DNA of 64,000 bases from Lama guanicoe (Eukaryota): the NCBI GenBank assembly GCA_013239625.1, contig MU056277.1, positions 1,528,076 through 1,592,075 on the forward strand, read 5' to 3'. The stretch's first letter is position 1. The number at the start of each line of letters is the position of its first letter. The notes below the pieces were generated by a model. That model did not search any database, was not told the DNA's origin, and was given only the letters and a program-made list of their open reading frames with translations. Shown piece by piece: positions 2,137 through 56,853 of the stretch. Both the position numbers and the translations under genes were made by a program.

Positions 2137-4989
2137 AAGCTGGAGGACACGGTCAGGCAGGCAGGGGTCGAACCCAAACCCAGGGCTCAAGGACGGACAG
2201 GCGGGAGGACTGCATTTCTCTGCCCAGGAGGCTCGGCTGGTGACTAGTTTCTGCTGAAGCTCACGGCAAACATCTGACTGAAGGGTGATGGGAAGCAGGG
2301 CTGTGCCTTGGGCTGGGCTCCCCGCCGCCCGTGACATCCAGCGCCGACAGCCTCGGTCTCCGCATGTCCCCCTGCGGTGGGCAGGAGTGGGGAAGGATAC
2401 TCTGCAGAGTATCCGGCCTGTGCTGCTCCGCATTCCAGAAGCTTCTACACTGCGCCACCTCTCTGTCAGCCAGGACGCCCACCATCACAGGGCAGGGGGA
2501 GCCGGAGACGCTCACTGCTCTTCTGTGGGGTTGGGGAGGAGGACCTCCAGACGTATGCTGGGGCTGGCTCTGGGCCACCCTCCCTGGCACAGAGGCCCTG
2601 TCAGGGCATCTCTCCCAGGCCATCTCCTCAGAAGGACTCTTGGAGCTTCCGAGGGTCCCCCGGAGCAGGGAAGAACACGAGGCTGTGATTGTCCTACTCG
2701 GGTGCTCCAAGCAGGCTGGAAGGGAAATGGCTTCCCTCTTCCTCTGCCCTCTGCAGGCCCTCGGTGGCCCTCAGCCACCCAGGGGGTGGGTAGCCGCCGT
2801 CCCGCCAGACCCAGCGCCTTTGCTCGGGGCCTTCACCCACGGCTTTCCAGACGCCCTCTCCTGCCGGGTGTCCCCTGGGGTCCCACACAGTAGCCCCTAG
2901 AAAACCCTGGAGACCGCAGGGATGCAGAAGCCGGAGCAGGGAAACGTCTGTCCAGCCCGGCCCCGCCCCATTTTGTTCTCTCCCTTTTGCTTCCCACTCA
3001 GCCAAAGACCCTGCGGGGACGGGGACAGTGGCGACGGCCACTCCGAGCCCAGCCGGTGCCCCATGCGCCCCTGTGGACCCTTTGTTCCGGGTGTCGTCAG
3101 CACTGCTGTGAAGCCAAGACTGCCTCCTGAAGGGCTTCCCCGCATCTCGTCTCTGTCGGAAGCGTGACCCTCAAACATGAGACGGAGCAGAGATCGCAGA
3201 CCCTGTGAGCCCTGTCAACCAGGTGTGACGGTGCCATCTCCTCAAATTGCCGCTAATCTACCAGGGGCCGTGCTGTCTGCAGCCTCCCTTGCGCTGTTTG
3301 CTCCCATTCGGTTACCGCTTTCGGTTTCCTTCTGAGGTGTCACTGTTTGCCATTTAGTCAGTAAGGAGAAGCGTGCGAGGGCTTCAGGCATGCGGATCTG
3401 GGGAGCTGGGAAGAGCCGACTGGCTGTTTAGGGAGGACGGTCTTGCTGAGGGTGGTGAGAGCTGGAGAGAGAGTGCCCCTCCGTCCTGGGAACAGCCTTC
3501 TAATTATGTCGTCAGGCTTGCTGGCGAGCTCTTTCCCTGTGCCGTTGAGAAACCGTGTTCTGTGTTAAGGAGATTACCAGATTGTGATGCTGTTTGCTGA
3601 TTACTTTTTATTGTTTAAAGAATTTGGATGTATTAAACCAAACATTAAAAAGTGATTCACATGGAGCGTAATTACTGGAGATGAGGCTGGGGGACACGGG
3701 TGGGTGGGAGGGGAGGGAGGAGATGGCGTTTGGGGGCTCTCACGGGGCCAGTGGGGCACAGGCAGGGACCCCATGTCAGTGTGACAGACGCAGGTGCTGA
3801 TGGATGCAGCTGGAAGGGTCGGGAGCCGGGTGGCAGAGAGGTGCAGCTGTAGGTTTCTGAGTGAAACAAACATTTCCAGGTGAGAGATGTTCCTTACTGA
3901 GCAGGAGAAATGAGCCATTTGAATTGTGCACAAACACGCTGTCCTGGTGCCCGCCCTTCCCGCTGGGAGAGAGAACCAGAGCAGCGAGTAGGGGAGCCTG
4001 CCCTGAACGGCCCCTCCCATGTGGGCTGCCAACCCCCCCCAGGGCCCCCTCTGATCTCAGACCCACTTCTGGGGGAGACAGTCGGGGACCAGGGGAACAG
4101 GCTGCACACTCTCCCTGCCTGTCCATCGCTCGTGGGCACCAGTCTTCATGCCACACCGTCTACTACCTGCTAATGTAAATAATAAACAGCCCGGAGCTTT
4201 GTTTCCAGCTCCACGTGAACACAAAGGGCACAAGAGTGGGTATCGAAGGATTTCATGGCAGGTCCCATCAAGGGAGTGCACAGTGAACCATGGCTGTTTG
4301 CGCCGTTTGCCGCCCGGGAGCGGGCGGCAGTCCTGGGCCGTGTCCTGCCCGCCGGCCCACAGCCAGGCGCTCCTCAGGAGGAGCTGCAGTAGGATTTGGG
4401 TTGATTCTGACAGATCCTGCAATTGTCAAGTTTGAACTGACGCATAGGTGCTCCGGTGTCACCGCCCTGGTGTGTCTGTAAGAGCAGGAGGTGGGCCAAG
4501 GGCTTCTCCCACAGGCGACAAGCTGCAGGCTGCGAGGACGCTCGCCAGCTACTGAGCGCTCGTGGGCCGGAGGCTGCCGGGCATCAGGGAGGCGTGAATG
4601 GCGCCGTGGCAGCGTCGGTGTGGGCAGAGCTCGGCTGGGAGGCCGGGTCGGCCCCTCCTTTCTCAATCTGGGCTCCCGGAACTGCAAATAGGAGCAACCG
4701 TTTACTTTGGAGATGTTGTAAGGCTGAAAGAAGTTTTGTTTCTTTCTTTCCTTTTTTGTTTCTTGTTTTTTTTTTTGAATGGACAAGACATGCACAAAAT
4801 TCGAAAGATACCAAAAAGACCCATCTCCTGATAAGTTCTTTGATTTGTCAATTTGTGAAGCCCCGCCCCCGTTCACATTTTGGAATGGGACCCGGGAATG
4901 GGACTCACTCCACATGGAACCATAAACCCAGGGAGAAGGGGGACCTGCAAGAACGTTCCCTTGTCTGGTTGTGGGGATCACCATATACC

Positions 4990-5550
4990 GCTTAGCCGGC
5001 TGTTGTTGGGTTAGTGTACCATTTCACACAGCCTCGAATGCTGCGGTGGGTTCTCTGGACACAGGCATTTTGCACACGGGCCAGTGTATATAAGAGAGCA
5101 ATCCCCTGAAGTGCAATTTGGGGGTCGAAGCGTGTATGCAGTTTTTGATCGGGAGATTGCCAAACTGCTCTGCACGGATTCTGCACTGACTCGCCCCCAC
5201 CCCCAGTCCCTGGATCCGCCATCAGCACCAGCCTAGGGTTTGTCACACGTTTGGCCTTTGCCAGCCTGAGAGGGGAATGGTGGTGTCTCACTACAGTTTT
5301 AATCTGCGTTTCTCTTTTCATGAGGAAGATGGGGAGTTTCACGTGCGGGAGGCACTTGTGTTTCGTTCCCTGAGAACCGTCTGCCCGCACCCTGCCGTCT
5401 GTTCTGCTGGTTTGGTCTTCGGCTTATTGATTCGGAGAAGTTCTTTATCTCCCAGACAAATTAGCACCTTATAAATGAGTTCCACTGTTTTGATCCACTT
5501 AGTCATTTGTCTTTTCTCTTTGTTCCTATTCCTTTCTGTAATTCAAAAAT
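4990..5550 (-). mobile_element. Old L1 (L1ME-like) ORF2 3' region, part 1
   Basis: Antisense L1 motifs such as gattgccaaactgctct and tggtgtctcactacagttttaatctgcgtttct. ORF 4992..5390(-) contains the ORF2-like segment QIKTVVRHH. Confidence 0.7.
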
Positions 5551-5559
5551 CTCTAACTT

Positions 5560-6450
5560 TTTTATGTAAGGTGAGGCAAAAATTTCTTAGGCATGACACC
5601 AGAAGCATGATCCAAGGAAGAAAAAATGACAAATTGAACATAAAAAAAACTTCTGCTCTTCTAAGGCCGCTGGTAAGACAATGGAAGGACAAGTCACCGA
5701 CTGAGGAGAAATATTTGCAAGTCATATATCTGATGAAGGGTTTGCATCCAGAATACGTAAGGCGCTTTTAGAACTTAATAATAAAAAGACAATGACCCAA
5801 CTTTTAAAACGGGTTAAAGCTGTGAATAGACACTTCACCAAAAAAGAGACCTAAGTGGCCAGCGAGCGTGTAACAGGCGCGCGGCTGCTCGGCGACNNNN
5901 NNNNNNNNNNNNNNNNNNNNNNNNNNNNNNNNNNNNNNNNNNNNNNNNNNNNNNNNNNNNNNNNNNNNNNNNNNNNNNNNNNNNNNNNNNNGGGGGGGAC
6001 CCGCGTGCCCGCCCAGCCCCGCGCGCCCCGGGCCCTGCGGCAGCGTTGCGTCGTAGCCCCAGGTGGGAGGGGACCCAAGCGTCCCCCGGCGGCGCGTGGG
6101 CGGACGCGTCCTGGGGCGCCGCGCTGTGCGGCGCCTGTGACTCGGGAGGACAGAGGACCAAGCCTGTGATACACACGGCGACAGCTGCGTGAGTGAAAGC
6201 GACCAGGCAGGGCGCGCCCCGCGTGGCTCCGGTTGCTCGGCCCTCTGGAAAAGGCGACCTGCCCCTCGGTGCCAGAGAGCAGGGCGGAGCTGCTGGGGGA
6301 GCCGAGGGGGGAGCGGGAGCAGCCGGAGGGCGGGGGACCGACCCTGGGCAGAGGCCACGAGGGGACCCCGGGCGTGCCTGCGGCCCGCGGACGGCGACTG
6401 TCTCGACTGGTGACGCCGCCAGGCCGCGCGCTCCTGCATCTGGGCCTGCT
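5560..6450 (+). mobile_element. L1 (L1MB/MC/MD class) ORF2 end plus 3' UTR, distal half strongly GC-converted, spanning an N gap
   Basis: 5560-5855 is clearly L1 (aatatttgcaagtcatatatctgatgaaggg; tgaatagacacttcaccaaa). After the gap, collinear L1 anchors persist: ACCCAAGCGTCC 6073, TGATACACAC 6167, TGAGTGAAAG 6190, TCTGGAAAAGGC 6244, CAGAGAGCAG 6273, CACGAGGG 6356. Confidence 0.8.
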
Positions 6451-6510
6451 GCCCGCAGCGTGCTCCCCGGCTGACTGCGCAGGAAGGGGGGCTGTACGGA
6501 GCGCCTGACT
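5860..6510. promoter_or_regulatory. CpG-island-like segment (L1-derived)
   Basis: By eye about three-quarters or more G+C, with very dense CpG and GC boxes GGGCGG at 6098, 6282 and 6328. No associated exon was recognised. Confidence 0.55.
5897..5991. other. Assembly gap (95 N)
   Basis: Run of N. Confidence 1.
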
Positions 6511-6844
6511 TCTCTTTACGGACTGTGGGTCTCGTGGCGATTCTTTCCTCACTCCCACTTTGAGGAACAATCTATTTTGTGGGACGAGGCAGCGAGCCCT
6601 TAGGAATGCCGTCTCAGAGGGTTTCACTCTCCACGTGCGTGTAACTCCAGCCGGGATTTGGAATAGTGTGAAGCAGAAATCCAGCTTCTTCCCCCACTTA
6701 GGCCAGCGTTCTTCATTGTAGAAATTAGTCTTTCTGTCCTTACTTGAAATGCTGTCTGTGTCACCTAGTAAATCCTGTATAAATTTGATTGTTTCTGGAC
6801 TTTCCCTTTTGATGCTTTTGTCCCTTTTTGTACCGATACTGCAT

Positions 6845-6915
6845 TTTTTTAAATTGAAGTTTAGTTAGTTTTTACAGTGTTGTGTTGGTTCCTAGTGTAC
6901 AGCATAGCGATCTAG

Positions 6916-6958
<43 letters not shown>

Positions 6959-7028
6959 ATTTTTCACATTGTCTTTGTTTTAGGTTAGTACGAGTTCCTG
7001 AATTTAGCTCCCGTGCGGCACAGTAGGA
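6845..7028 (-). mobile_element. Short L1 3' terminal fragment (artiodactyl/camelid type)
   Basis: Poly-T followed by aattgaagt...tgtacagcatagcgat...cacagtagga. Matches the L1 3' ends at 40745 and 55945. Confidence 0.8.
6920..6955. repeat. (TA)n microsatellite, about 18 units
   Basis: Perfect dinucleotide run inside the L1 3' end. Confidence 0.98.
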
Positions 7029-7537
7029 ATGTCACATTGTTTGGATTACTGTATATATATTTTAATGTTTAACATGGAGAGTCTATAACAAGTTCCTTAC
7101 TACTTTCAATTTTCAGAGTGATTTTCAAAGTAATTGAAAGTGAAGTTTAATTTTCAAAAACTCCTTGACTATTCTTGCTGATGACTTTTCCCTCTGAAAT
7201 TTAGAATCCGTATTTTGGTTCAGCGAATCCTCCTTGCGCCTTTCTGGAGGTGGCAGAGCGTTAGCTGCAGGCTGTCATTAATGGCACAGGTCGTCTCGCG
7301 GAGGACTGACCTCCTTGTGCTCTCGGGTCTTCCCAGCAGAGACTCTGCTTATCTCAGAACCCTTTCCACTTACTTGTCCTTTTTCACATCTTCCAGTAGT
7401 ATTTTCATTTTCTTCGTATAAATCTTGTGCAGTTTCCTTTTTCAGTTAAACACGTATTTTAAGACCCAAGCTGCCTTGTGGAAATTTAAAATAAGATGGT
7501 TTCATCGGAGAAGTAGCAAAATAATCACATGTCAGCT

Positions 7538-8440
7538 TTTGTTTTATTATGGAAGTAGAGTTGATTTACCACCTTACATTAGTTTCAGGTGTGGAGCGCA
7601 GTGGTTCAGTACTTCTACAGATTATACTCCACTGAAAGTCACTACAGGGTGACGGCTGTAGTTCCCTGCGCTGCACCGTGCATCCTTGTTGCTCATCTGT
7701 TTTGCGTACAGCAGTCATGTCTATTCATCCCCCACACCGTCTAGCCCCTCCCCACGCCCCTCCCCACTGGGAACCACTGATTTGCATTCTGTGTCTGTGG
7801 GTTTGTTTTGCATATACATTAATTTGTATTATTTTCAGATTCTGCACGTAAATGATATCGTACAGTATTTGCTGTTGTCTGACTTAACTCAGTGTGATCA
7901 TCTCTAGGTCCATCCATGTTGCTGCAAATGTCAATAGTTCACGCTTTTTACGGCTGAGTAGTATTCCACTGCATAAATATACCACATCTTTATCCAGTCT
8001 TCTGCTGATGGACGTTTAGGTTGCTCCCATATCTTGGCTTTTATAAATAGTGCTCTGAACATGGGGTGCATTATCTTTTTGAATTAGTATTTTTGTTTTT
8101 TCCAGGTGCAGCCCTAGTAGTGGGGTTGCTGGATCATATGGTAACTTTGTGTTTTTTTCAGGACCCTCCATACTGTTCTCCAATGTGGCTGCGCCAGCTT
8201 ACACTCCCACGAGCAGAGCGGGAGGGCGCCCTTCTCCCCACACGCTCTCCAGCACGTGTTATCTGTAGGCTTCCCGACGGCGTCAACCTCAGAGGCGCGA
8301 GGTGGTGGTTCAGTGTTGATTTGCTTTTCCCTGGTGGTCAGTGATGTTGAGCGTCTTTTCATGTGCCTGTTGGCCATCTTTGTGTCTTTGGAGAAATGCC
8401 TATTTAAGCCCTCTGCCCATTTTTGATTTTTTTTTTTGTT
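7538..8440 (-). mobile_element. 5'-truncated L1 (ORF2 C-terminus plus 3' UTR)
   Basis: ORF 8114..8377(-) reads MANRHMKRRSTSL...CWRACGEKG...CSWECKLAQPHWRTVWR, which is the ORF2 cysteine-rich C-terminus. Also contains ggtccatccatgttgctgcaaatg. Confidence 0.92.
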
Positions 8441-8454
8441 TGTTTAATCACAGG

Positions 8455-8535
8455 TCAGTCTTGGTTTCGACATCCAGTCTGTGGCTTACTAACCAGGTCT
8501 CAGCCCGTTACTTAACCTCTCTGAGTCTCAGCTAC
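8455..8535 (+). mobile_element. MIR fragment
   Basis: MIR core sequence ttacttaacctctctgagtctcag. Confidence 0.65.
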
Positions 8536-10849
8536 TGTGGGCCCCAAACCTCACACAGCTCTCTCCGGGCAAAGCCTGCAAGAGGCCTGGGCTGCAGGGG
8601 TAGCGATTAGCAGGTGCTCACAGGCCACCGCCAGGGTCCGGCTGAGACCGCCTGCCCTCCCCACACCGGGGCGCCAGGACACAGGGCCTGCAGGAGGCCA
8701 GCGGCCTCCTCCACGACAGGGCCACCCCTCCAGCCCTTCCCGACGTCATGCTGTATTCTGATCCTTCAGTTCCTGGAGGCTCTGTTGGGGCAGGACGCAG
8801 AATCAGGGAGAAGCTGCTTGCCCGAGCACTGCCGTGAGACCCCGGTGTGAGCGGAGGGGGACAGTTGCTGCCAGGTGGCCTGTCCCCACGTCCCCTGACC
8901 GTCCGGGAGTAGGGCCCAACAGGAAGAGGGGAGGCCTGGCTGTGGACAGAAGGGTGCAGCCGCGCTCGGCAGGAGCCTCCTCCCGGACGAGCAGCGTGGC
9001 TTTAGCTGCTGCGTGTAATGCGATAGTGGAGAAAGCACCACCACTGAGTCTCGGTGTTGGGGGCGGGGTGTGGCCGCGAGGAGGCCGGTGAGAACCGGCG
9101 CACAGCTGGGTGGGATCACCGCAGATGCAGGGTGTGGCCCCACAGTGGGTGCTGCGCGTGCAGACACGGACCCGGTGGCCCCGTCATCCCCTCCCTTAAG
9201 CCCTAGTGCCCACCCGCCGGTGAGAGGGGTAGGTGACAACTCAGGAGAGCACCCTGCTCCCCGCCCAAGTGCTTCAGAACCCCTGCCTGTGTCTTGTGGC
9301 GCAGTGGTTCTGGGGGGGCCTGGCGTGAGCGCAGGTTAGGGTGGGGGGACATCCTGATGCCCAGAGGAGCCAAGGTCTGTCCCGAGCCCCCTCCGGCCAG
9401 GCCAGTGCCCTGGGCCCCGCCCCTCTGCTCTCGTGTCTGGGTTCAGGTGCTCCTTTGTGGGTAAGAGCACCTCCTGGGCTAGGACATGTGCTCCGTGAGG
9501 ATGGGGAGCTCTGGGGGCACCCCTGGACTGGAGCAGAATCCCTGGGGCGTGCTGGGTGCTTAACAAAGAGCGAGGAATGAAAGCCAGGGAGGGAGGGAGC
9601 ACCCACCCTGGAGAAGACAGAGTCCATCTTGCGAAGCCCTGTCTTGGTGGGTGATGAGCAGTCTGTCAGCCAGACCAGGGTTCACATGCACCGACTGTGT
9701 TCTGGGACCCCAGCCTGCAGTTACAGGCAGAAGCGCTTTATCACTAAGGTACACAGTGATTCATGCTGAGAATGTAGTTAAAGTATCGTGGCAGTTTAAA
9801 AATGACACGCCATCAGGGTAACGCAGCGGAGTGGCTCGTTGAGACTGAGCGCTTCCTGCTCGCCTGCAGCGCGGTCAGCGCATGACAGTGAGCGCTCTCG
9901 CCTGACACGTGGCTGCACACGTGAATACACCACCTCACGTGCCACGCCTTGGACTCTGGGCAGGTGACCCTTGAAGATTGCTGTGGGACCCAGAGGTGTC
10001 TAAGGGCAGCGTCCTGAGTTCACCCTGGGTTTGAAGTCCCAGCACCTGGAGGAGGGCAGCCTCCTCTGAACATCAGCCCTGGTCCGTCCGTCCGTGCGAA
10101 GACGTGCTGCACACCCGCTTGGCAACCTTTGCCTCTGTCCTTTTGCAGATTACACAGGTTGGGATTCTGAGACCCGAACGAGGCTCTGAGCCCTGTGCTG
10201 ATGGCTGGGAGGGGTCTCAGGGACCCTTCGAGTGCAGCCGCGGAGGTAGGGGCCCAGGGGAGGGGGAGGGTTAGCCCCAGGCTCTGCCCTCCTGGTCCCC
10301 GCAGGGCAGACATGCTGGCCTGGAATCAGGGCTCGGCCGCTTCTCCACTTCGTAGGGGTCTGGGAACAACGATGTACGGTCAGTACCACCCAGAGCTCCC
10401 GACACCGACTGAGAACTTACCCTGACCGTCCCACCACCTTGGCTGCCTCAGACTTTTCTGGGGGCTGTGTCAGGATGCGGATGCTGGCCCCTGGGGTTCT
10501 GGTCCCTGGGTCCAGCCCTCATGGGCTCTAGGATGCCCCAGCTGCCGGTCTGGACGCCCTGGACACCTGCTGCCTCTGCGGGGTCGCACCAGCCCTCGCG
10601 CTGCTGACGCGCCGGGGCTCAGGCATCCATCCCAGAGCCATCACTGTTATCCCTTTGTGTTAACAAGAAATAAGACAGGAAAAGAGAACAAAGACAAACC
10701 AGCAGAAAAGCCCAAGAGGAGAGTGACAGTTTGCTCAGGCGCCCACACCGGGCACTGACCTGCGGGCCTGGGTCCTCCCCTGGCACACCGAGGGCGGGCA
10801 CAGGGGTTAACGCGGATCGAGACTGCCTCCCGGGCCTGAACCACCATGG

Positions 10850-23902: not shown

Positions 23903-24490
23903 TTTTACTGAGACAGGATCGACAGCTATCGCTGTGTGTGTTTCAGGGCTGCAGCGTGCAGGTGTGATGCATTTGCGTGTCGCCGTGTGATGCCACCGGC
24001 CGTCAGCTGGTGCATCTGTCCTGTCACACAGTTACCCTTCCCTCTGTGGGGAGGACATTTACGACCCAGCCTGAGGAACGCTGAGGTTTACAGCCGGGTT
24101 GCTTGACCGTAGTCACCCGTTTTCCTTCTGGTCGCACCTTTGTGCTCTTTGCCCAGCCTCTCCCCAGTCCCCTCCCCCCGGCCCTTGGTGACCGCCATTC
24201 GGGTCTCTGCTTTTATGAGTTCAGCTTTTTAAAAATGTCACATGTCAGTGAGATTGTATGGAATCTGACTTTCTCTGAATTTTCTCACTCGGAATAACGC
24301 CCCCACGGTCCATCCATGTTGTTGCAAAGGGCCCGACTTCCTTCTTTCTCTCGGCTGCATAATCTCCCGTGGGGATTTATCCAAAGGAAATGAAAACACG
24401 ACATCGAAATGCTGCCTGCACCCCATGTTCAAAGCAGCGTTGTTCACGTCGGCCAGGACATGGAGACAAGCCCCGTGTCTACCCGTGGGT
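23903..24490 (-). mobile_element. L1MA-type 3' end with a 5' inversion (twin priming)
   Basis: 23903-24367 is antisense L1 3' UTR (ggtccatccatgttgttgcaaa). 24368-24490 is sense L1 (gggatttatccaaaggaaatgaaaaca...catgttcaaagcagc) from immediately upstream in the consensus. Confidence 0.8.
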
Positions 24491-26309
24491 GTGTGTGTGT
24501 GCTAACAGGAAGGCAGACTCGTTTCAGCCCACAGTGGGCCAGCTCCCTCGGGACCCCCGGCCTGGTGTAACCCACAGGCCTCAGAACCCATGGTTGGCCC
24601 CCTAGACGGCCAGTGGTGGGTTATTCGTTAGCATCGGTGAGAAGGGCCCCTGTCTCCGTGGGGCCCAAGCCACGGAGGGTGGAGGGTTTCCTTCCCTCCT
24701 GGGACTTTTGATTCTCAGCAGGCAGCTTCCTTCGGGCCATCGCCAGTCCTGGGTGGCGGAGAGCTTCAGGGTCGCCACGTACCTCCCATCATGGGACAGT
24801 CAGGGGCAGTCAGCAGCCCGACCCTGCCTGCAGGAAGGCGCCCTTGGCGGAGGTGCCCCTGCGGGCGGGCGTGTGCCGCGTGGGGGTGTGCCTGGTGCGG
24901 CCCCGCAGCTGCGGGCTGGTGCCGTGTCGCTCTCGCTTTGTTCCTCACAGCCTCTCTGCACTGAGCCCCAGATGCAAATGAAATGGTCACAAGAGAAGTA
25001 ACTGGGTTAAATGCGTGCTAAACAGGTTTAAAATTACTGCTCATTGTCTGGGAGCAGATGCAAGCCTCAAACAAATGCAAAGCATCCAGGCAGATGCAAA
25101 GGGAGGGCAACTGGAGCTGGGTCCCCAGTGCTCGCTTCCCAGCGCCGCCTGGCCATCCTGCCACCAGGCGAGGTGGGCAGCGGCCCCAAGGACAGGGAGA
25201 GCCTGGCCCAAGGGCAGGAGGAGCGAGAAGGGTCTTTGGCTCCGTGCCTGTCTCTGCCTCCTAAGACAGGGATCTTTGCATTGCTAGCATCTTGCCAAGG
25301 AAGGCCGATTAAAGCACACCTGCCCCTGGCCCCTGCTGTGTGTGCTCCATGTGGTTGTCCAGGGGCCTTTTTCTGTCCGCGTACCACCAGAGCCCCCGTC
25401 CTGGTGCACAGCAACACTCTGCCGGGCGGCCTAGCCCACGTCGGCGATTTGTGCTCTTCTCTGGGTGCTGAAGCTCACGTGTACGTGATGTGGCCTCGTG
25501 TGCAGAGCTGCCGCATATGGCACATGGGTTCCTTGATGTTTAACTTGGTAATAGAGCCTGGATCTCTGATCACCAAGTGTTCATGAAACATTCTCCGTTC
25601 TGTTTCAGCTCCATTAGAGAAGGTTCTAAGACGTCTCATCTGAGCCGGGCGTTTCAGAGAGCACCGACTCTGGCCTCCGTGGGGCAGGCTCACTTTGTAC
25701 TCACTAGTGGGGATGCAGGCATCCAAGGCAGGACGCAGCCCGCCCAGGGCGCCCTGGAGAGCAGAGCCGGCCCAGACCCACTCTGAGGTCTCTGTGGACA
25801 AGGCTCCGCCGACCACGGGGAGGGGGGTCGGGGTCAGCAGCTCAGTCCTGCTTTTCCTCAATGTTTTAGCGTCAAGATAGTATTTGGGGGAATAAAAGGC
25901 AATACTTGACTTTAAAAACCTTACTTTTGATCAATAGAAATAATTTATTTTAACTGCTCCATAAATGTTTTGCCAAAGTGGCTGAAAATGAGCTCTTTGA
26001 CCAACCGCTTTAAACTTTGCTAGCACTTTGCCGCTTACCACAGATTAATGTAAAGGGAATTTTAAAATCCCTCAATGCCGTGGGGAAATCAGGAGTCTCT
26101 CTGGAATCTGGAGTTCTGCTTTAGCTGTGTTAAACTGAAGGTGCCCACTGGAAATGCAAGTGGCGACATCAAGTGATCAGTTAGTTATGGTCCAGAGCTC
26201 AGGGGCAGCAGGCAGGGCTTGGATGTACATCCACCTGGGAGGCGCTGACACAAGTGCAGGTCACAGAACACTGAGACCCCGTCTTTTCCTCACTTTCAGA
26301 CTCCCCCTG

Positions 26310-34400: not shown

Positions 34401-35437
34401 CTTCGTGCACTTGACCTTGCCCATCACAGTTCTCTGCTGGGAGTTCAGCACAGTTCCCAGGATGCCTGGATTTTCTGAGAGCGTCCCCGGCTCACCGGTG
34501 TGCATCTGAGCGAGACCAGCCCCACGGCGTTGCTGAAAGCAAGACCTGGGGTGGAGGCCTCTGACCGCCTGGCTGAGGCCAGAGTAAACCAGGGACCTAG
34601 ACACCCCAAGCTGTAGAAATAATGCACAAGGCAGACTCTGAGAAGGTATCCTCGAAGGGGTTATGAGTTCTCAGTGATAATTTGAAAGCCGGGCGACGCC
34701 AGGCGGAAGCGGGGCTGCGGAGGCTGGGGTCGAGCGGGGCTCTCAGGCAGGACGGGAGGCGCCGTCAGGGCGAGAGCCCACCTTTCCCGGCGGCAGGGCG
34801 CACCGTGAGCGTGCGGCTGGCTCTGACCTGGGGCGAACCACCGTCTGCGTCACTCTCCTGCCGCTGCGGGCCCCGCCACGCACGGGAAACTGGCGCTTCT
34901 AAAGACTCAAGCGCTCGCAGGAGGTCCGCGGCCAGACGGAGCAGAGGCAGCTCTGGTGACGCCGATGCTCCCGCCCCTCCCCACGGCCACCCGCCGCTGG
35001 CCCCAGCCTGCTGGGAGGGGTGGCGACTCCGTGAGCGTCTGGCGTGAACAGGAGCAGAGGAAGACGCACACCTGTCGGTTGTTTCAAGGTCCAGCAATGA
35101 AAGAACACTTCTCAGGCGTCAGAGACACGTATTTGAATTGGGAAGACCACAACTGGAAAATGTAGCTCAGATTCACGCGCTAAGGCTTATTTTGAAGTCA
35201 AAAAGGAAAGAAAGCCTCAAGAAAGCAGGCGTGCCGTAATACAACTTATACACGATGCCCAGCTGTTTACGTGCATGTACGTGCTGGGAGATGCTGCCGC
35301 TGGGGAGAGACACAGCTGCTCCTTCCAGGGGGAGAAGCGATGCACTCAAAGTGTCGACAGAGCTCAGTGAAGGATAGAAAGTCACTTAACGCAGGCAAAT
35401 GACGCAGTTCTGTAGCCAGTGTGTGCACAGAACAGTA

Positions 35438-35593
35438 NNNNNNNNNNNNNNNNNNNNNNNNNNNNNNNNNNNNNNNNNNNNNNNNNNNNNNNNNNNNNNN
35501 NNNNNNNNNNNNNNNNNNNNNNNNNNNNNNNNNNNNNNNNNNNNNNNNNNNNNNNNNNNNNNNNNNNNNNNNNNNNNNNNNNNNNNNNNNNNN
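35438..35593. other. Assembly gap (156 N)
   Basis: Run of N. Confidence 1.
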
Positions 35594-36393: not shown

Positions 36394-36555
36394 CAGCACT
36401 TCTCCAACTCATGCAATTCCTGGGCATCTTCTTGATATGCAGAGAGTGGGTCAGTGGGTCTGAGATGAGTCCAAGATTCAGCATTTGACAAGCGCCCAGG
36501 CGATGCTGGCGCGGATGCCGCGGGCTGGTGGGCCTCACCTTGGGTGTCGGGGCAC
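36394..36555 (+). mobile_element. MER5A-like hAT MITE
   Basis: tcagtgggtctgagatgagtccaagattcagcatttgacaagcgcccaggcgatgctg. Confidence 0.7.
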
Positions 36556-38482
36556 AAGGGGGAACATCCAGGTGTGATACTCGAGATCTGGGGGCTACAG
36601 CAGCCGCGCTGCTCCCAGGGCAGAGTTCCTGGTTGCCGGTAGAACTGCAGCAGGGGCAAGAGGAAGACAGACCCGTGGGCAGCGCCAAACGAACACCTTG
36701 CATGAACTCGCGGGCTGCTGGCGTGGGTGGGGCTCTGGTCCCCAAGCAGCACCGGCGCCTTGTGTCCGTGGAGCGTCGGCTTTCTTGTCTGAGGGGAGGG
36801 TGCTGGCTTTGCTCCTCTCTGAGGTTTGTTCGGCCCTGGCGCTGGTTTCTCCGACCGAGGTGGAGCTGCTCCATTACCGCGTGGGAGGTCAGACGGCCGT
36901 GCGAGGTGAACAGGGCTGAACGCGAAGGCGTTCCCTACGCCGAAGGGTGGCCAGGTGCTGCGATCTGAATTTGCATGTTTGCCTGCTGTCCTCCAGGGCA
37001 ATCTGAAGCATCACGGCTGTGTTCGCGCCGGTCGCGCGCTGCACGGCACGGTCCAGACTCTGTCTGCCACGCGGGGCGAAGAGTCTCGTCGGCCAGCGCC
37101 ACGGGGTTGGCCTGTCGTTGCTGAGCCTCCAAACCCCTGAAAAGCCTCATCAGCCGGGAGGAAGTCGGGAAGCTCCGGATGCCCCGTGGAGCCACTGCAG
37201 TGGGCTGGTGGCGGCCCGTTCTCCCCGGACCTGCCGGCCCAGGGGCAGCGCTCTCGCCAGACGTCCAACTCCCGGCCCCCCAGGCCCCCGCCTGCCAGGC
37301 AGCAGCCTGCTGGGGCCCCCGCCCCAATCTGGCTTGGTGGAAATAAACGGAGACCAACCGGACGAAAGCAGGTGAAGTCTGCTCCAGGCTTGCTGTAGCG
37401 GGCAGCCGCTCCAGCGCTGTGTCTGGGGAGGCCCGGGGCGGGGGGTCAGCGGGAGAGCGCCCGGTGGAGAGGGGCTCGGTGTCCTGATGAGGCTCCTGGC
37501 CCGGGGGCCCGGGGCCGTTCATTAGAGCGGGCACCCCGTATGCGGGCTGAAGGGAGCACGTGTGATGTCCCGTGGCCAGTCCCGCAGTGGAAGCAGGGAC
37601 CCCCGCTTGGGAAGCGTGAGGGATCGACGAAGCCCTGGCCGCGTGGGGCAGTCGTTGCAGGTGTCGACGTTACCAGAGACCAGGGCCTGCGTCCTCCGCG
37701 TCGGACCAGTGGGGAGAGGCTGCTTCCTCTCCCCACCTACAGTCGGACCTACAGGCAGAGGCTGCCTCCTGGGCCGGCCCCATCTGCCAGAGGTTGGCCT
37801 CTTGGACCGGCTGCTGCAGGGTGCGGGTCCGAGTTCTGAGCTGACCGCTTGTATATTCAGCCTCTCCGCTTACGATGTGGCTGGTGAGGTGACGTCTTCC
37901 CAGAGCTTTAAGGGAGTCAAGGTGGCTCCTGGTTCAGTGAAGGCATAAAAATGTTTTTTTAGAGCAAGATCCAAGCAGAGGGGGGCTGTGTTTCGTTCTA
38001 ATGGAAAAGAAGCTTCCCTAACGGATCGGGTGTCACCCCCATAAGAAGGCGACAGAAGTCCGTGAGAACAGAGGACAGTGTGCCCGGCTCCAAGGGGGAG
38101 ACGAGGGGCGCCCAGGCCTGCCCCACTTCCGCTACGCAGACCCCACAGTTCCCAAGCAAATTCTGACTGCTGATGTGACCTTCAGCCATCACGGAGCTTT
38201 GGAGAGGGTGGACAGGGATGCCCAAGCTCCTGCAGGTGACCCCACGCACTCATGACAGATGTGTGGCTCCGGGGCTCCTGTTGTCACTGTGAGACGGGGT
38301 CGCCTTAGGGCTGGTGGATGAAACCAGGTTTGTGGACGTGCAGAGTGGAGGACCAGACAGATCCTTCCCCACAGAGACTTGGTCTGGCTGGTCCCTGGGG
38401 TGGCCACCCGGATGGCCTCTCTCCCTGGTGCCATTTTAGCCGAACCACGACCTCTTCTGGGGTCAGCACAGCGCTGTTCCGT

Positions 38483-40735: not shown

Positions 40736-41467
40736 CCTGTGTATATATATTTTATTGAAATACAGCCAGCTTACAATGTTGTGTCAATTTCTGGTGTACA
40801 GCATAATGTTTCAGTCATACATGAACATACGTATATTCGCTTTCATATTTTTCACCATAAGTTGCTTCAAGATATTAAATATAGTTCCCTGCTCTTTACA
40901 GTATAAACTTGTTTATTTTATATACAGTAGTTAGTATCTGCAAATCTTGAACTAATTTATCTCTTCCCACCCCCTTCTGCCCCTGATAACCACAGGTTTG
41001 TTTTCTATGTCTGTGAGTCTGTTTCTGTTTTGTAAATAAATTTGTTTGTCTTTTTTTTTAGATTCCACATATGAGTGATATTGTATGATATTTTTCTTTC
41101 TCCTTCTGGCTTACTTCACTTAGAATGACAGTCTCCAGGTCCATCCATGTTGTTGCAAATGGCATTATCTTATTCTTTTTTAGGGCTGAGTAGTATTTTA
41201 TTTTATAAATATACCACAACTTCTATATCCAGTCATCTGTCAGTGGACACTTAGCTTGTTTCCATGTCTCAGCTGCTGTAAATAGTGCTGCTGTGAACAT
41301 TGGGGTGCAGGTGTCTTTTTGAATTAAGACTTCCTCTGGATACATGCCCGGGGTGGGACTGCTGGATCATGTGGTAAGTCTGTTTTTAGTCTTTTGAGGA
41401 ATCTCCACACTGTTTTCCAGAACGGCTGCACCAAACGGCATTCGCACCAGCGGTGTCGGAGGGTTCC
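40736..41467 (-). mobile_element. 5'-truncated camelid-type L1 with TSD
   Basis: Well-preserved L1 3' UTR and ORF2 end. TSD ctcaaatgagc(aa/gg)ttt at 40720-40735 and 41468-41483. Confidence 0.93.
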
Positions 41468-42984
41468 CTCAAATGAGCGGTTTTGACTTGGGGCGTGTGC
41501 CCGTTACTGCGTGCTGTTGGGGATGTGGAGGGGTGTGAGCACTGGGGAGTGGAAATGCGGGTCTGCCCATTACAAATCGGTCAGACCTACCTTGAGAAAA
41601 AGAAACCCATCACCAAGCTGTCATGACACACGACTCAGTGGATTTAGTGAGTCTGGGGACAGGCTAGCACAACCCCTTCCTACCTCTCAGCCTGAGGGAT
41701 GTTTGCTTCCACAACGTTCGTCTTCCCCAAATCCACCACGTGCACCGAGTGGGCCTCCAGACGTGGAGAAGAGCTTTTGCGCCTTGTTTCCCAGCATGGC
41801 CTGCTGAGTCCCCGCGTCTCCCAGCGCCCAGGTGTGAGTCTGCTGAAAGGCGTCCCAGGGCTACAGCGTAATGCGTGTCCCTGACGGCGAGGTGTGAGGT
41901 GCGGAAACAGAATCTGTTTCATGGGAAGCACAGCGAGCCGTCCTCTGGGTGTAATGGGCTCGTGGGCGCAGCGCGATCTGTGACGTGTGTGCAGCAGTAG
42001 TCCTTCTCAGGACAGCTGGGACCGTCCTGGTCTCTTACTGACCGGGTGGTTTTGTTACTTGGCGCCTCTGTAGTTGAGCAGTTACAGTGGAAGCTTCAAG
42101 GCAAGAATGTATATTGATAATCACAGTTAAGTTTAGAAAAACCGAAGCCAAGTGAAAACAAACGGCTCCAACCCTAGAAGAAAACTCCTTGTCAGGTCCG
42201 TGCGGTCGCTGAGGCCCGCAGCTCGGGGGCCGCCCCGCACCCGGGGGAAGACCCAAGCGGGGAAGGAAGAGCGGCCGCCCGCACAGCCCCCCGGGCGACG
42301 GGGACGGTGCTTTTCATTGCATGCCTGATGTCTGAGAATACTAAGAAATGGCATTGCAAAGCCACCTTGTAGATGAGTCACAATTTGTGACTTTCTTCGG
42401 TATTGTCGTGCGGACAACCCCAGACTCTCAGACTTTTCCTTGGATGCCACCAGGTGCAGGGAGAAATGACAGTTGTACAGGTTGTAAGAGGGTCCAGAGG
42501 CGGCTGGCCTGGAAGCTGGAGGAAGGCAGCTCTGAGACCCGGCAGACTCCTGTCCCCTGGGAAGGGCTGAATCAGCCTGGAGGCCCGCGCCCAGGCTCGC
42601 AGGCATGTGGCGCAGAGCTCCGGCCGGAGACCGCTGTGCCTGCTGGGCGGGGAGCCCTTCTGCCCCTTCTGCGCCCAGGAAACTGCTCCAGGCACTTGCC
42701 AGGAAGAAGCCTTTTTTAAAACTTGAAGCAGCAGCACAAGAAGTGCTTGGCACAGTTCGTGCTCGGTGCCCAGAGCCCTCGGGAGAGGAGCTGGAGGTCG
42801 GCCTTGCCCGTGTCTTCTCTTTGTCGGGTATCTGAAGGTGTCTTAGCGCCTGTCCGGACCTGTCTGGTGGTGTGGCCCCTGTGGGCGCGCCCATCAGCTC
42901 TGCGTGTGTGGAAGGAAAGGCTCCCTTGATTGGTGGCCCGGACATTGTGCTTCTAGCAGAACCCGGGACCGGGACCCACAAGAC

Positions 42985-43125
42985 GCGGGTTTTCATTCTG
43001 CTCTGCCATCGATGGCTGTGTAACCCTGGGCAGGTCGCTTAACAATCTCTGAGCCTCAGTTTCTTTATAAATCAAAATGTTTGGACTTGATCTTTTCTCT
43101 CTCTTAACGCTTTACAGTTCTGTGT
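42985..43125 (+). mobile_element. MIR (MIR3-like)
   Basis: ggctgtgtaaccctgggcaggtcgcttaacaatctctgagcctcagtttc. Confidence 0.75.
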
Positions 43126-43139
43126 TTCATTGATATAAA

Positions 43140-43490
43140 AATTAAAAGAATGAAGTAATGCCCTTTGCAGCAGCATGGATGGACCTAGAGATTACCATAC
43201 TGAATGAGGTAAGTCAGAGACAGATACCATATGACATCACTTATGTGTGGAATCTAAGCCAAATGGCACAAAATAACTTATTTACAAAACAGAAATAGAC
43301 TCACAGACAGAAAACAAACTTATGGTTACCAGGGGAAAGGGGAGGGGAGGGATAAATTAGGAGTTTGGGAATCACCAGATACACACTACTATGCATAAAA
43401 TAGATAAACAAGGTCCTGCTGTACAGCACAGGGAACTATATTCAATATCTTGTAATAACCTATAATGATAAAAGACTATGAAAAAGAATC
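43140..43490 (+). mobile_element. L1 3' UTR fragment (camelid/artiodactyl type)
   Basis: aatgccctttgcagcagcatggatggacctagaga...acagcacagggaactatattcaatatcttgtaataacc. Confidence 0.92.
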
Positions 43491-43729
43491 TTTATAAATT
43501 GACCCTCAGCTCAGTACTTCTCTGACCGGAATCTGGGCCGGCTTTGCCTGGCCACTCTCTAGAACCAGAGTCTGAACACCATGGAGGCTCACTGCCGTGT
43601 TCCCGGTCCTCTGACCAGCCCCCGGGGCCGCATGTGAGCCCGAAGCAGGTATGTGCCTTGTGTCCCAGGCTGTGGAATTTGCACATGTGCACATGGGCTC
43701 CTAGAAAGCAAGGGACTCATCAGTGTTAA

Positions 43730-49440: not shown

Positions 49441-51629
49441 CAGTTCTGAACTATTTCTGATTTTCCAGTTAATTTTCCCAGCTACAAGTTTGCTGTTTAT
49501 TCTTTCAGTCAAGAGGCATTTTGGAAGCTTCTATTTTTTTTTTAAAGGTTTAACCAGAGAACCTTACAGAGCTTAGATCTAACAGAAAATAGATACAATG
49601 TCATACTCTTAAATACAAATTCTTATTTTTTTCTATGTAATAAGGACCTAAAAATAAAGGAGGCAGCCAGATGGAGCAGGACGGACATGCAGTCGCCAGA
49701 GACCTTCCTGAGTCTGGGACAAGACCCGTCTCCTTGTCACCCCTGGAGTCTGGGTGGCATCACTTGCTGTGGTTGATACAGGCAGCCTGAGGTTCGAGTG
49801 ACAGGTGTGGGCATGTGTGTCGTCACTGGGGGGTGGACACCTGTCACTCCTGTCACCAGGGAGACCCACGTGGCTCTGAGCTTGTAGGACACGCTCAGTG
49901 GAGGTTCCGACGGCAGCGGGAGGAGACTGCGGTTCTGTGCCCGGGTCCTTCTGCAGTTTGTTCACAGCCTGAAATGCCCATTTAGACTCAGCCCTGGACA
50001 CGGACTAATCCGTTCTTGTGATGGCCGCGAGGTTTGGGAGGATTTCCTCTGGCGTTTCGTCAAAGCTGTCATTCGTTTTGTAGAAATCACTCTGTAAATC
50101 AGCCTGATTATTTGGCTCGTTTTGTGCCTGAGGGCCGGGAGCCCAGCGGTGGGGCGGGGAGGGCATGGCGAGGGGTGAGCAGGTGGGCAGCCCAGGGAGG
50201 CAGAGGAGCTGGGAAGGGCTTTCCAGAACACGCCGGGTGGAGGGGGGTGCTGGGAAAGCAGAAGGCATGGCAGCGCGGGGCTCGGTGGGGGTTCTCACAG
50301 GAAAGTTCCTTCTCTTTGAGGCCCCAGGGCTCCACAAAAGAAGAGGTCCTTTCCTGTTGGGTCAGAACAGCCCCAGATGGCTTCTACCACACGTTCTGGC
50401 AGAGAAAGAAATTATCCGGCTGGAGAGCGGTGACCCTGGTGACTCAGAGTCCCGGCTTCAGAGCCACTCCTGAGGGTGCAGTGGGGGCGCTGACACTTGC
50501 CCACTGGGAGGCTCCTGGCATATCCCCGTGCTTCTTGGAACCTCAGCGGGAGGACGGAGAGCAGGGTCCCAGGCGGACACAGGCGCCTGGGGGATGCCGT
50601 GCGCTGAGGGCGGGAACTCCGGGCTTCCTTCAGGAAACCAATTCTAAAATGTTAAAATGTGTCTTTCTTAAGCCTAAATTGTAAATGACATTAAAAAATG
50701 CATTGCAAAAGCTAAACAGGCATATAAAAGGGTGGTTTCCTTAGATAAGTTTGCTCAATTTAAACCTGAAAGCTGGGCAGCTTAGGACGGGAGGGAGCCA
50801 GCTCCCACTGTGGGAGAGGGCTGGACAAATCCCCACTGAGCGCGTGATGCGAGGCTCGCACCGGGCTGCTGACTGCCAGGGCCTGACTGGGCTCGCTTCC
50901 CATCAGCTGGATGGTTCGAGAGCTCTGGACCTGCTACTGCCCGCCAGGAGCACTGAAAACCCGCAGTTGACCCCGGGACGCAGGCCTGAGCCACATCAGC
51001 CCGTCAGCTTCAGTCCGGAAGCTGCTGGAAACCCTACTGCTTACTCAGTGGGTCAACAGCCAAGTGCAAACGTCTGCAGGCAGGCAGCTCGTCCTGCAAG
51101 AAAAAGAATGAAAAAAGGAGAGACAATGGCATGTGTGGAATTCAGTCTGGGGTCAAGGACAGTTGCTGGGCGGGCAGATACAATACACACAGTGGCATCC
51201 CCTGACACCCCACCCTGGCGACTCGGGCCTCCTCCGCCGCCCTCCTCCATCCTGTTCGTCCCCCGGTGGAGCCGTCCCGGTGGCTGGACACCCTCACTGC
51301 AGGGTTTCTTTACTTGGTTAAATGCAGAGCCACCACGAGAGCTTGGTTTTAACTCCACTCTTCACGGATGCGCTGTTCCAAAACACACCATTTCTGACCT
51401 CCGTGTCGGCCTGGTGCTCAGAATCGTTCAGCCTCCCTGGACAGTGGCCTGTAGGACAGTGTCCGGCCAGCAGCCGACCAGGGAGCCCGTCTTCCGAGTC
51501 CATCTCCATCTGCAGCCTTGCTCGGAGAGGCGGCTCCACGCCGTGCGTTTGGGGCGAATGTGCCTCAAGTCCCAGTTCAGGAGCCAGTGTTCCTGGTTTT
51601 CAGGTGAAAACAGTAGGGCAGAAGCTGGC

Positions 51630-51845
51630 TCAGGACTTGCAGATACAAACTACTGAGTATCAAACAGGTGCACGGCGGGGCCCTCCTGCACGGCACAGGG
51701 AACTGCATCTAATGCCTCTGAGAGCCTTTAATGAAAAAGAACCTGAGAAAGAATATATGTACACACGGAGAACTGAATCGCTGTGCAGTATGCCAGAAAC
51801 TGACGTGACGTTGCAAACCGAATGTCCTTCAGCTTCAGAAAACGC
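51630..51845 (+). mobile_element. L1 3' terminal fragment
   Basis: gcagatacaaactact...gcacagggaact...aactgaatcgctgtgcagtatgccagaaactgac. Confidence 0.85.
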
Positions 51846-53630: not shown

Positions 53631-55943
53631 GTTACAAGAGTCCGATAACGCAGTGAGAAAACGCACAAGGTGTGAACGCACAAGGCTGGACTGGTGGCCC
53701 CTGAGTGGGGAGGGCGTGGGGGTGGAGTGGAAGAACCCCACCCGGACCCCGGGAGCAGGGGAGCTGAAGGTGCAGGCGGAGACCACGGTCTGCGATGGGG
53801 AAGGAGAACGAGTGTGCCTCCAGCAAACAGTGGCCTCAGACCTTCACCCTCCACGCCCCGGGCGAAGGGCTGCGGGAGAAGCAGCTGGTCTGAAACAACG
53901 CAGTGAAAAGCACGGCAGTCGGTTAACCTGCGTGGAAAACACAGAGCGCGTCGGGAAGAGGATCGACAGCTGGTGCTGTTTTAGAAAGGAGGAGATCTCC
54001 AGCCGCGGTCGGGAGACCACAGACTTTAAGGCCCTGCCTCTGTGTGTGTCTTTGGAAACCTAGCCCTGTGTTCGCCGGTGCTGTGTTTTCCGCAGTGTTT
54101 GAAAAGTGGTGCCCCCGACGGGCACCTGCGGGGCAGCGGGATCCAGGTCCTTCTCCTGCCGGCAGCCCGCAGAGCCGCGCCTGCCTCGGGCCCCGCCTCC
54201 TCGCCACCCCTGATTGGTCACCGCTGCTCCCGGCAGTCAGGAGCCCTGCGGCGCTTAACTCCGTCCTCCAGGATACTTTTAGCGCTTTTCCTGCCGACCC
54301 AGTCACAGCCCTTCCTCGGGTTTGCCTGCAGGAGCCCTTTGAATACCCCGCTGTTAAGTACCCTCTGAACTTGCATGGCCCCGGGGGCTGGATTGTGCTG
54401 TCAGTGCTGAGAAGTGCCCCGGAGCAGAATGTGTTACAGGTCAGCACCTCACTGCTGCTAAGACGGGGAGGTGTCCGCTGCTTGGTGGGCATCGGTTGCA
54501 TTTGAAACCTGATATCCCACCTCGATGGCATGATTTGGCTGTCCTCGAGGGGCAGTCTGCTCTTTACATCTAATCCTGCACCCGCCCAACTTCTCACGGC
54601 AAACAGGCGAGCCCCCGCGCCCCGCTGTGTGTTCAGAGAGGGGTGTCCTTCCTGCTGCTCAGGCTGGAGCCGCACGTCCGGCCCCGCAGTCTGATTGCTG
54701 GTCCATGGCAGCCCCTGGGCACTGACGGCTGGACAGGCGGGAAGGAGGCAGAGCTGTGGTTTGGGGTCTCCCTTCTCCCAGCACCTTTCTGGTTCCTGCT
54801 GTACCGTCAGGTAATCTAAGAGTGATGGGAGCAACCCCAGCATCTCGGTGGCTTAACATAGTAACAGCTTTGTCCTTTCCTCATTCATAGTCCAGTACAT
54901 GGGTTTTCCAGGCAGTGAGGCGGGATCCTGCTCTGGGCAGCTGTCCAGGGCCCACCGGCCAGAGTGCCGTCCCACAGGATGCCAGGCCCACAGTGCGGCC
55001 CAGTCAAAGATGGGACGTGTTTGCTGAGCACCAAACCGCTCCCCGGCCCTCCTCGGACTTCTGAAGGGTGGCATAACTGCTGTGGAGTCCACATCCGTGG
55101 TCACCACGCCGCAGTGAGCGTTTAAGTGGGTTGGAAATTTTAGCGAGCCGACTCTGCGGGAACTTGCTCTGCCACCCTCTAGACCCAGTCACCCAAATGC
55201 ACACAGAGGATTGTACCTGTAACGCCTTCGGACGCAGGGGGCTGCACAGGTGCTCCAGTCATTCTGCAGGGAGGTGAGCCCCTCGGCCTCTCCCCTGGCA
55301 TCTCCCGAGGCCGATGCACGGCCCTCAGCGAGAGTGGGCAGTGCACCAGGGGTCAGCCGCCAGGCCAGCCTCCTTCGGAGGTCCTCTTTGCCCCCGGCGT
55401 GCCCTTGACCGGCTGACCTCCATCACCATGGCCAATATGGAGCTGGGAAGTCCACGCAGTCCTGTGGCAAGTAAAGGTGTGGACCCAGTGGACTCTTGGG
55501 TCAAGAAGGCTGTGGTGTCCATCCCTGAAGGCCCAGTGAGCGGGAGCGCCTGAGTTCAAGGGCAGGGTTGCTCAGAGGTCAGGCGCTTGTCTTCTTCTCA
55601 GGCAGGTACCACGCACTGTCCTAGAACCTGGCTGGTCAAGTACGTCTGTGGACCCTGCGAGCTGGCTAGAGACGCAGCTCCTCAGGCCCTGCGCAGACCC
55701 CCTGTATCAGAGTTGGGTTTCCATGGGGCCAAGGGTGTTCCTGCAGCTCTTGGACCCTGGAGAAAAGCAGGTGAGGCCCTGGGAACCCCACCAGTGACAC
55801 TGGAGGGGCTGGCAGTACAGGTAGCCCCCGAAGACCCTGCGTGTCTCTGATGGGTTTTTAATGATCTGATGAAGGGGAAGGGCATTTGGGGGGATATTAT
55901 CTCTCTGTTAACCAAACAGGCAATTCATCAGCAGTCTCCTTTT

Positions 55944-56853
55944 TTTTCAGTTGAAGTATAGTCAGTCACAATGTTGTGTCAGTTTCTGGTGTCCAGCATC
56001 ATGTTTCAGCCATACGTGTACCTGCATATATTCCTTTTCATATTCTTTTTCATTAGAGGGTACTGCATGATATTGAATATAGTTTCCTGTGCTGTACAGT
56101 AGGACCCTGTTACTCATCTATTTTATATAAAGTAGTCAGTATCTGCAAAACTCGAACTCCTGATTTATCCCTTCCCAGCCCCTTCCCCCTTCCGGTAATC
56201 ATAAGTTTGTTTTCTATGTCTGTGAGTCTGTTTCTGTTTTGTAAATAAGTTCCTTTATATCATTTTTTTTTCAGATTCCACATGTAAGTGATAGCATATG
56301 GTATTTTTCTTTCTCTTTTTGGCTCATTTCACTTAGAATGATGATCTCCAAGTTCATCCAAATTGCTTCCAATGTCATTATTTTATTCTTTTTATGGCTG
56401 AGTAGTATTCCATTATAGAAATATACCACATCTTCTTTTTCCAGTCATCTGCTGATGGACATTGAGGTTGTCTCCATGTCTTGGCTATTGTAAATAGTGC
56501 TGCTATGAACATTGGGGTGCAGGTGTCATCCTGAAGTAGGGTTCCTTCTGGATATGTGCCCAGGAGTGGGATTCCTGGGTCATATGGTAAGTCTATTCCT
56601 AGTCTTTTGAGGAATCTCCATACTGTTTTCCACAGTGGCGGCACCAAACTGCATTCCCACCGGCAGTGCAGGAGGGTCCCTTTTTCTCCACAGCCTCTCC
56701 AGCATTTGTCATTTGTGGACTTTTGAATGATGGCCATTCTGACCGGTGTGAGGTGACACCTCATTGTAGTTTTAAGTTGCATTCCTCTAACAATTAGCGA
56801 TATTGAGCATTTTTTCGTGTGCCTGGTGGCCGTTTCTGTCTTCACTGAAGAAA
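55944..56853 (-). mobile_element. Young 5'-truncated camelid L1 with an open ORF2 C-terminal frame and TSD
   Basis: ORF 56378..56845(-) reads [19 protein letters not shown]...[10 protein letters not shown]...[16 protein letters not shown]...[11 protein letters not shown] cagcag(t/c)ctcctttt at 55929-55943 and 56854-56868. Confidence 0.96.

Follow-up and report, generated by a model that had tools for sequence, protein, structure and literature searches.

Clusters of substitutions from weak (A or T) to strong (G or C) bases are an established product of GC-biased gene conversion (gBGC), and several described systems come close to the locus considered here. In the dog, short GC spikes, or GC peaks, are attributed to gBGC at stable recombination hotspots and overlap CpG islands and assembly gaps (PMC4053742; Axelsson et al. 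2012 via Berglund et al. 2012); a peak is defined there as a 500-nt window with at least 1.5 times the GC of its 10-kb background. In primates, biased gene conversion islands are recognised as a class resembling CpG islands and presented as highly methylated and subject to rapid deamination (PMC8286816; Cohen et al. 2011). Across placentals, many recombination hotspots that do not depend on PRDM9 lie at hypomethylated CpG islands, whose GC richness has been put down to gBGC as one explanation (Joseph et al. 2024, PMC11161765). Here, we analyze a 64-kb stretch of the Lama guanicoe genome (contig MU056277.1, positions 1,528,076 to 1,592,075; hereafter the window, in whose own numbering all coordinates are given), where an old L1 retrotransposon fragment passes abruptly into a GC-rich block of CpG-island grade. 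A preliminary description had proposed that the block is the 3' end of this same L1, rewritten from A/T to G/C at a recombination hotspot, and our results lean towards an L1 origin while changing the picture of the hotspot.

The AT-rich fragment at 5560-5854 (+ strand; GC 0.366) belongs to ORF2 of an old L1. Specifically, the translation of 5705-5851 (+) matches L1 ORF2p residues 1038-1084 (PDB 8uw3, phmmer E = 1.8e-5), with the residues mapping to 5708-5848; the same PDB search with 5342-5500 (-) and 5630-5701 (+) gives no match. In 50-nt bins, GC then steps from 0.34 (5800-5849) to 0.70 (5850-5899), and the proposal of an AT-rich L1 from about 5560 with an abrupt switch to GC- and CpG-rich sequence at about 5855 is thus borne out. 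The GC-rich domain starts with 42 nt left of an assembly gap (5855-5896, +; GC 0.74, 7 CpG), which may continue the L1 frame. It is interrupted by 95 N at 5897-5991, a gap of estimated length only with GC-rich letters on both sides, and resumes as a block of 519 nt at 5992-6510 (+), with GC 0.761, 63 CpG and a CpG observed/expected ratio (o/e) of 0.85. For all 561 known letters of 5855-6510, GC is 0.759 and CpG o/e 0.88. The right border is graded over about 200 nt, with GC going from 0.74 through about 0.52 (6500-6700) to 0.37, and the shoulder at 6511-6700 leads from a GC of about 0.52 into AT-rich, pyrimidine-rich sequence.

Relative to a 10-kb background, the block is the highest 500-nt GC peak of the window (1.37 times; 0.77 vs. 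0.56). The composition thresholds for CpG islands, reportedly set by Takai and Jones at a length of at least 500 nt, GC of at least 55%, and CpG o/e of at least 0.65, all lie below the values of 5992-6510. The Sp1 boxes to which the preliminary description drew attention are as frequent as composition predicts, i.e. 4 GGGCGG/CCGCCC hexamers in 519 nt vs. about 3 expected by our own arithmetic. The purine skew and the GC skew of the block are both positive, like those of the L1 sense strand. An Rfam search of the block matched no family, and a search for tandem arrays found none beyond a 31-nt repeat of a 9-mer. A conserved exon was also considered for the 212-aa minus-strand frame at 5992-6627 and was rejected because this frame has no homologue.

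L1 copies, which arise by target-primed reverse transcription, usually have an intact 3' end. In copy A (55940-56905, -; ORF2p 1087-1237, E = 2e-67), a well-kept 3' end of a younger family that served as our reference and as the nhmmer query across the window, 885 nt follow ORF2p residue 1087. The block therefore sits where the 3' part of the left element is expected. Modest support for such an ancestry comes from a comparison in which bases are reduced to purines and pyrimidines. This two-letter test is justified because private weak-to-strong (W>S) changes in the secure L1 copies are transitions in 75-83% of cases, and in simulations it is the more powerful test, detecting about 50% of cases when 30% divergence is added. 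Against the majority purine/pyrimidine string of copies A-F (coordinates below), the block scores 29.2 vs. 19.5 ± 2.7 for 1,000 dinucleotide shuffles; 29.2 is reached by 6 of these shuffles and, among 530 real pieces taken from the window outside L1, by 1. When the block is shuffled in chunks of 10, 20, and 40 nt, this score is reached 6, 1, and 4 times in 500, and the reverse complement of the block and the reversed block score 15.1 and 19.5, respectively.

The two-letter match is collinear. It pairs 6022-6405 (+) with copy-A positions 385-778, i.e. from about ORF2p 1191 into the 3' untranslated region (UTR) and including its G-rich tract, over 366 columns with 78% identity and 9 small gaps. 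Its strand is +, and its L1 coordinates place it downstream of the left fragment. An older, independent L1 copy at 24 kb returns the same register (24350-24118 vs. 6144-6357); its score is equalled in 8 out of 500 shuffles and in 0.8% of the real controls. A minus-strand L1 that is also old (4745-5480), taken as the two-letter reference in its turn, gives z = 0.2. The register also agrees with strings that we take to represent the L1M consensus, which align by eye at about 60% identity over 6038-6183, and this agreement was a lead and never used as a test. Strings of this kind were what the preliminary description had relied on for collinearity, and they do not establish it. Collinearity with the L1 3' end is suggested by the purine/pyrimidine pattern only, and four-letter and protein comparisons stay at chance level. 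From these sequence comparisons, we consider it somewhat more probable than not that 5992-6510 is L1-derived.

Evidence on the process comes from L1 copies whose alignment is secure. For every copy of the young family, a change was counted as private where the copy departs from the state common to the remaining ones. Copies A and B (40744-41490) have balanced spectra, with 40 W>S vs. 43 strong-to-weak (S>W) changes and 37 vs. 41 (77 vs. 84 pooled), and their implied equilibrium GC is 0.39 and 0.38, respectively. The others depart from this pair: copy C (7537-8416) has 89 W>S vs. 47 S>W (equilibrium GC 0.56; P = 0.003 vs. A + B), copy D (43121-43573) 41 vs. 21 (0.51; P = 0.017), copy E (51608-51843, +), a 3' tail found by nhmmer with E = 7e-19, 34 vs. 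7 (0.70; P = 4e-5), and copy G (63836-63998, +), another 3' tail (nhmmer E = 4e-5), 23 vs. 1 (0.93; P = 3e-6). L1 sequence in the window is therefore under a strong, place-dependent drive from A/T to G/C. In no other securely aligned copy of the window is GC rewriting as clear as in copy G.

The same counts bear on how local the drive is. The window has 56% GC overall and a CpG o/e of 0.53 throughout, far above the typical mammalian average, and contains at least 4 other rewritten L1 copies, which makes the drive regional and patchy; a long-lived hotspot under 1 kb acting as a singular event, as had been suggested, fits this setting poorly. The patchiness, in place or in time, follows from copies A and B, which are balanced although their flanks are as GC-rich as those of C and E. 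In copy G, 39% of the weak sites have been converted, and taking the block from about 40% to 76% GC needs about 60-75%, i.e. about twice as much. An older element under a drive like that on copy G would reach 76% GC, so that no exceptional hotspot is required. Since gBGC is an established cause of W>S clusters and a drive of this kind is seen on nearby copies, it is a plausible process at the block as well.

The drive could also have another source. If the block is L1-derived, its rewriting might stem from GC-biased mutation and repair in an island that is hypomethylated in the germline (e.g. through aberrant base-excision repair started by thymine-DNA glycosylase) and not from meiotic conversion. 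A repair-based mutation bias has been put forward for CpG islands (PMC4041421), and hypomethylated islands retain a CpG o/e like the 0.85-0.88 measured here. This explanation nevertheless leaves unaccounted for how an AT-rich and normally methylated L1 would have become hypomethylated to begin with. The same drive acts on the short tails E and G, which are not islands, and the regional GC richness with its CpG o/e of 0.53 fits a fixation bias linked to recombination. For these reasons, we regard mutation or repair bias as improbable.

We therefore favor the following sequence of events. The segment 5855-6510 would be the 3' part (the end of ORF2 and the 3' UTR) of the same old + strand L1 as 5560-5854, and a local, long-acting GC-biased fixation would have pushed it to about 76% GC and to the CpG density of an island. 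The most probable process would be gBGC at a recombination-prone spot, presumably the same process that is active in patches across the GC-rich window. Transitions within the block (A to G, T to C, and back) would be near saturation, which would leave only the purine/pyrimidine pattern of the L1, and the weak or strong state of each site would then reflect the local equilibrium and nothing else. As a joint statement, i.e. that 5855-6510 is the remainder of this L1 and that gBGC made it GC-rich, we see the case as evenly balanced.

A number of results weigh against this scenario and have to be set beside it. To begin with, the four-letter tests of the block against L1 3' ends of the window are all at chance level (z between -0.5 and 1.8), barring a single value of 3.6. 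Their log-odds matrix was built to tolerate changes from A/T to G/C, and the null distribution came from dinucleotide shuffles. Searches of the block across the window with nhmmer and blastn returned only the block itself, and asymmetric W>S log-odds Smith-Waterman alignments to 5 L1 copies of the window under 2 gap schemes give z = -0.5 to 1.7; the value of 3.6, one of ten, belongs to copy D and to an alignment outside the homologous or expected register. A position-specific profile of the L1 copies (z = 0.6-0.7), the most conserved ORF2 stretch (residues 1196-1237; z = -0.5), and collinear seed chaining (z = 0.3-1.8) likewise find no L1 signal in the block. Aligned to the old L1 at 24 kb with composition taken into account, the block reaches z = 2.6, off-register. 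On the protein side, Pfam finds no domain in 7 frames of the block, and phmmer against PDB has no match for 2 frames.

How much these negatives say depends on the age of the presumed element. In simulations, a rewritten copy of the young family would be readily detected, with z above 5, and a block of that origin is rejected given the scores observed. If the element belonged to an older family with nothing but the ORF2 tail in common with the references, the four-letter tests would have a power of only about 20%, so that an older L1 ancestry remains compatible with the negative results. The positive two-letter result has its own limit: about 25 exploratory tests preceded it, and a P-value between 0.002 and 0.01 after so many is only suggestive. 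The purine content of the block (0.55) is also just 1.4 standard deviations above that of other GC-rich pieces.

The direction of change adds nothing in favor of an L1 origin. In the best alignment of the block, the apparent spectrum is 166 W>S vs. 29 S>W, which equals the expectation from composition, given that the block has G or C at 77% of the L1 G/C sites vs. 74% of the L1 A/T sites. In the columns that match in purine/pyrimidine, the association between the weak or strong states is likewise absent (odds ratio 1.2, P = 0.32; ORF2 tail alone 1.5, P = 0.17). Any GC-rich sequence laid on an AT-rich L1 will show changes from A/T to G/C, and the argument that nearly all changes go this way, which had been offered as evidence, is therefore circular; the associated image of conserved G/C positions is not borne out either, with no memory of weak and strong states when references from the window are used. 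An excess of W>S over S>W changes, as a gBGC tract would show, stands on the neighboring copies C, E, and G; in the block, the excess is no larger than composition alone gives.

The left border, too, looks unlike the gradient of a conversion tract. It is a step within 50 nt, sharper than such a gradient would predict; it resembles the borders of insertions, and a structural junction accounts for it no less well. The alternative that this raises is that the block is not L1 at all. It would be older GC-rich DNA, whether a CpG island (true or orphan) or what is left of the background, and the L1 fragment next to it would be missing its 3' part. That part could have been lost by deletion, or the + strand fragment could be an inverted 5' segment from twin priming, with 4745-5480 as the 3' segment of the same element. 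Either way, the step at 5855 would be a structural junction. In favor of this alternative, the 50-nt step is like the borders of younger, AT-rich L1 insertions in the GC-rich window, the background of the window itself reaches 56-69% GC, and both the four-letter and protein tests and the weak/strong test came out as this alternative would have it. It does not account for a purine/pyrimidine match that is collinear, on the + strand, and repeated with a second L1 copy. At the boundary itself, 5855-5878 compared with copy A in the register fixed by the ORF2p matches agrees at 10 of 24 bases (P = 0.056), which points marginally the opposite way, towards continuing L1; free local alignment of 5855-5896 to copy A stays at chance level.

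The twin-primed variant draws on the arrangement of the neighboring elements. The old fragments at 4745-5480 (-) and 5560-5854 (+) lie head to head, about 60-80 nt apart, and an unambiguous twin-priming geometry exists elsewhere in the window. Here, L1 pieces at 24224-24493, also found with copy A by nhmmer, stand head to head, with 24364-24493 (+) corresponding to reference positions 338-462 and 24371-24224 (-) to 492-643, as in a 5' inversion by twin priming that removed about 30 nt where the pieces meet. This element, too, is GC-enriched (GC 0.52). For the pair beside the block, this geometry fits less well. Both fragments cover about ORF2p 1040-1084 by eye, and this shared L1 stretch of at least 135 nt exceeds the small changes that twin-priming junctions usually show. 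At the DNA level, no alignment can be made between the + fragment (5560-5854) and the 5' part of the minus-strand L1, so that an origin by twin priming or inverted duplication gains no support and is not rejected either. No target-site duplication was found at 4745 or 5855. Overall, a block of non-L1 origin is less probable than an L1-derived one, yet it is the most serious of the alternatives.

The lack of these insertion marks cuts both ways. The + strand has no A-rich tail after the block, and a search for target-site duplications under 3 insertion models, including the flanks at 4745 and 5855, found none above chance, which counts against an L1 end at this place; poly-A tails and target-site duplications are expected to decay in an old copy.

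Continuity across the gap is a further weak point. The left edge of the gap lies at about ORF2p 1100, and the purine/pyrimidine register sets 6022 at copy-A position 385, or about ORF2p 1191. With this register, and with the two sides continuous, the L1 sequence between 5896 and 6022 should measure about 272 nt; the assembly has 126 positions there, and about 150 nt beyond the 95 N would be missing. The junction or the block could even be an assembly artefact, with GC-rich letters misjoined to the L1 end or the two sides of the gap taken from different places. Only 42 GC-rich letters stand between the step and the gap, and the long frame of the block is unmatched by predicted proteins of other assemblies. 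Words of 5992-9500 are shared at 85-90% by 14 DNA sequencing runs of 4 organisms (about 15% by RNA runs), and the 10-15% missing could be the 519-nt block. Against an artefact stand the GC-rich letters on both sides of the gap and a two-letter match oriented like the left L1. Sequencing drop-out is moreover expected to leave gaps at GC-rich peaks, as reported for the dog in the same account of GC peaks (PMC4053742). We hold an artefact to be very improbable.

The AT-rich patches of the window are mostly L1 pieces, and its only runs of N are at 5897-5991 and 35438-35593. The second gap (156 N) has immediate flanks with GC 0.48-0.65, which are not extreme, and a rule that gaps mark GC peaks within the window was rejected on this ground. 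The old L1 3' part at 4745-5480 (-) matches copy A (nhmmer E = 2.6e-7) and ORF2p 1097-1180 (E = 0.04), has an A-rich tail on the reverse strand, and includes copy H (5076-5384), also found by nhmmer with copy A. It is partly GC-enriched (GC 0.50), and its GC swings between 0.28 and 0.64 over a few hundred bases. A protein search with its frame returned 1 near-identical frame and 2 low-complexity matches. The former is a predicted frame of 109 aa in a public short-read assembly (P0001; 2 contigs, the longest of 3,821 nt), 89% identical to the translation of 4995-5321 (-), which indicates that a related genome carries the locus.

Copies B, C, D, and F were likewise recovered by nhmmer with copy A. 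Copy F (6843-7049) is a young minus-strand L1 tail, and a perfect (AT)18 microsatellite lies within it at 6920-6955. Many 500-nt bins of the window pass loose CpG-island thresholds (e.g. 34501-35000 and 36501-38000). Among the 30 longest open frames of the window, none is a convincing coding frame.

What the locus means depends on the ancestry of the block. If it is L1, the locus would be a clean and datable case in which GC-biased fixation made a CpG island out of junk DNA. The transposon would supply a known starting sequence, from which the strength and the duration of the drive become measurable, and the sharpness of the border would reveal how narrow such a hotspot is. With the rewritten L1 tails added, it would mean that the genome has long-lived, patchy hotspots like the PRDM9-independent ones. 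A further-reaching and doubtful reading is that new islands, possibly promoter-like targets of recombination, are built from transposons at fixed spots of less than a kilobase. If the block is not L1, the locus is an ordinary GC-rich island beside a broken L1, and the lesson is methodological, i.e. that GC-rich DNA placed on an AT-rich consensus always yields changes from A/T to G/C.

Compared with L1 3' ends as such, the locus is alike in that its left flank is L1 ORF2 and in that the block follows the purine/pyrimidine pattern of the ORF2 end and the 3' UTR, G-rich tract included. It is unlike them in having neither four-letter nor protein similarity, nor a poly-A tail or target-site duplication. 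Compared with the GC peaks of the dog, the domain has a similar extent (about 1 kb or less), strongly raised GC, an overlap with CpG-island composition, and an assembly gap at the site. The ratio of 1.37 nonetheless stays below the 1.5 that defines a peak, because the background already has 56% GC.

Biased gene conversion islands share another property with the block. Their density is kept by a fast W>S gain and not by selection or promoter function (PMC8286816), and the saturation of transitions that we infer for the block would fit a turnover of this speed. That class is described there as highly methylated, unlike the unmethylated, promoter-like, and self-reinforcing state that the preliminary description had suggested as possible for the block. 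A CpG o/e of 0.85-0.88 is high for methylated sequence. The CpG islands of Joseph et al. (2024) resemble the locus in that local peaks of equilibrium GC are a fossil record of past recombination. They differ from it in being existing promoter-like islands, and what is proposed here is an island made from a transposon. That sequence of CpG-island grade arose in this way from an AT-rich L1 3' part, with its purine/pyrimidine skeleton surviving and a sharp border inside the element, is a doubtful proposition when taken as a whole. The block is probably best placed, alongside these systems, as an example of an already known type, i.e. a gBGC island or a GC peak.

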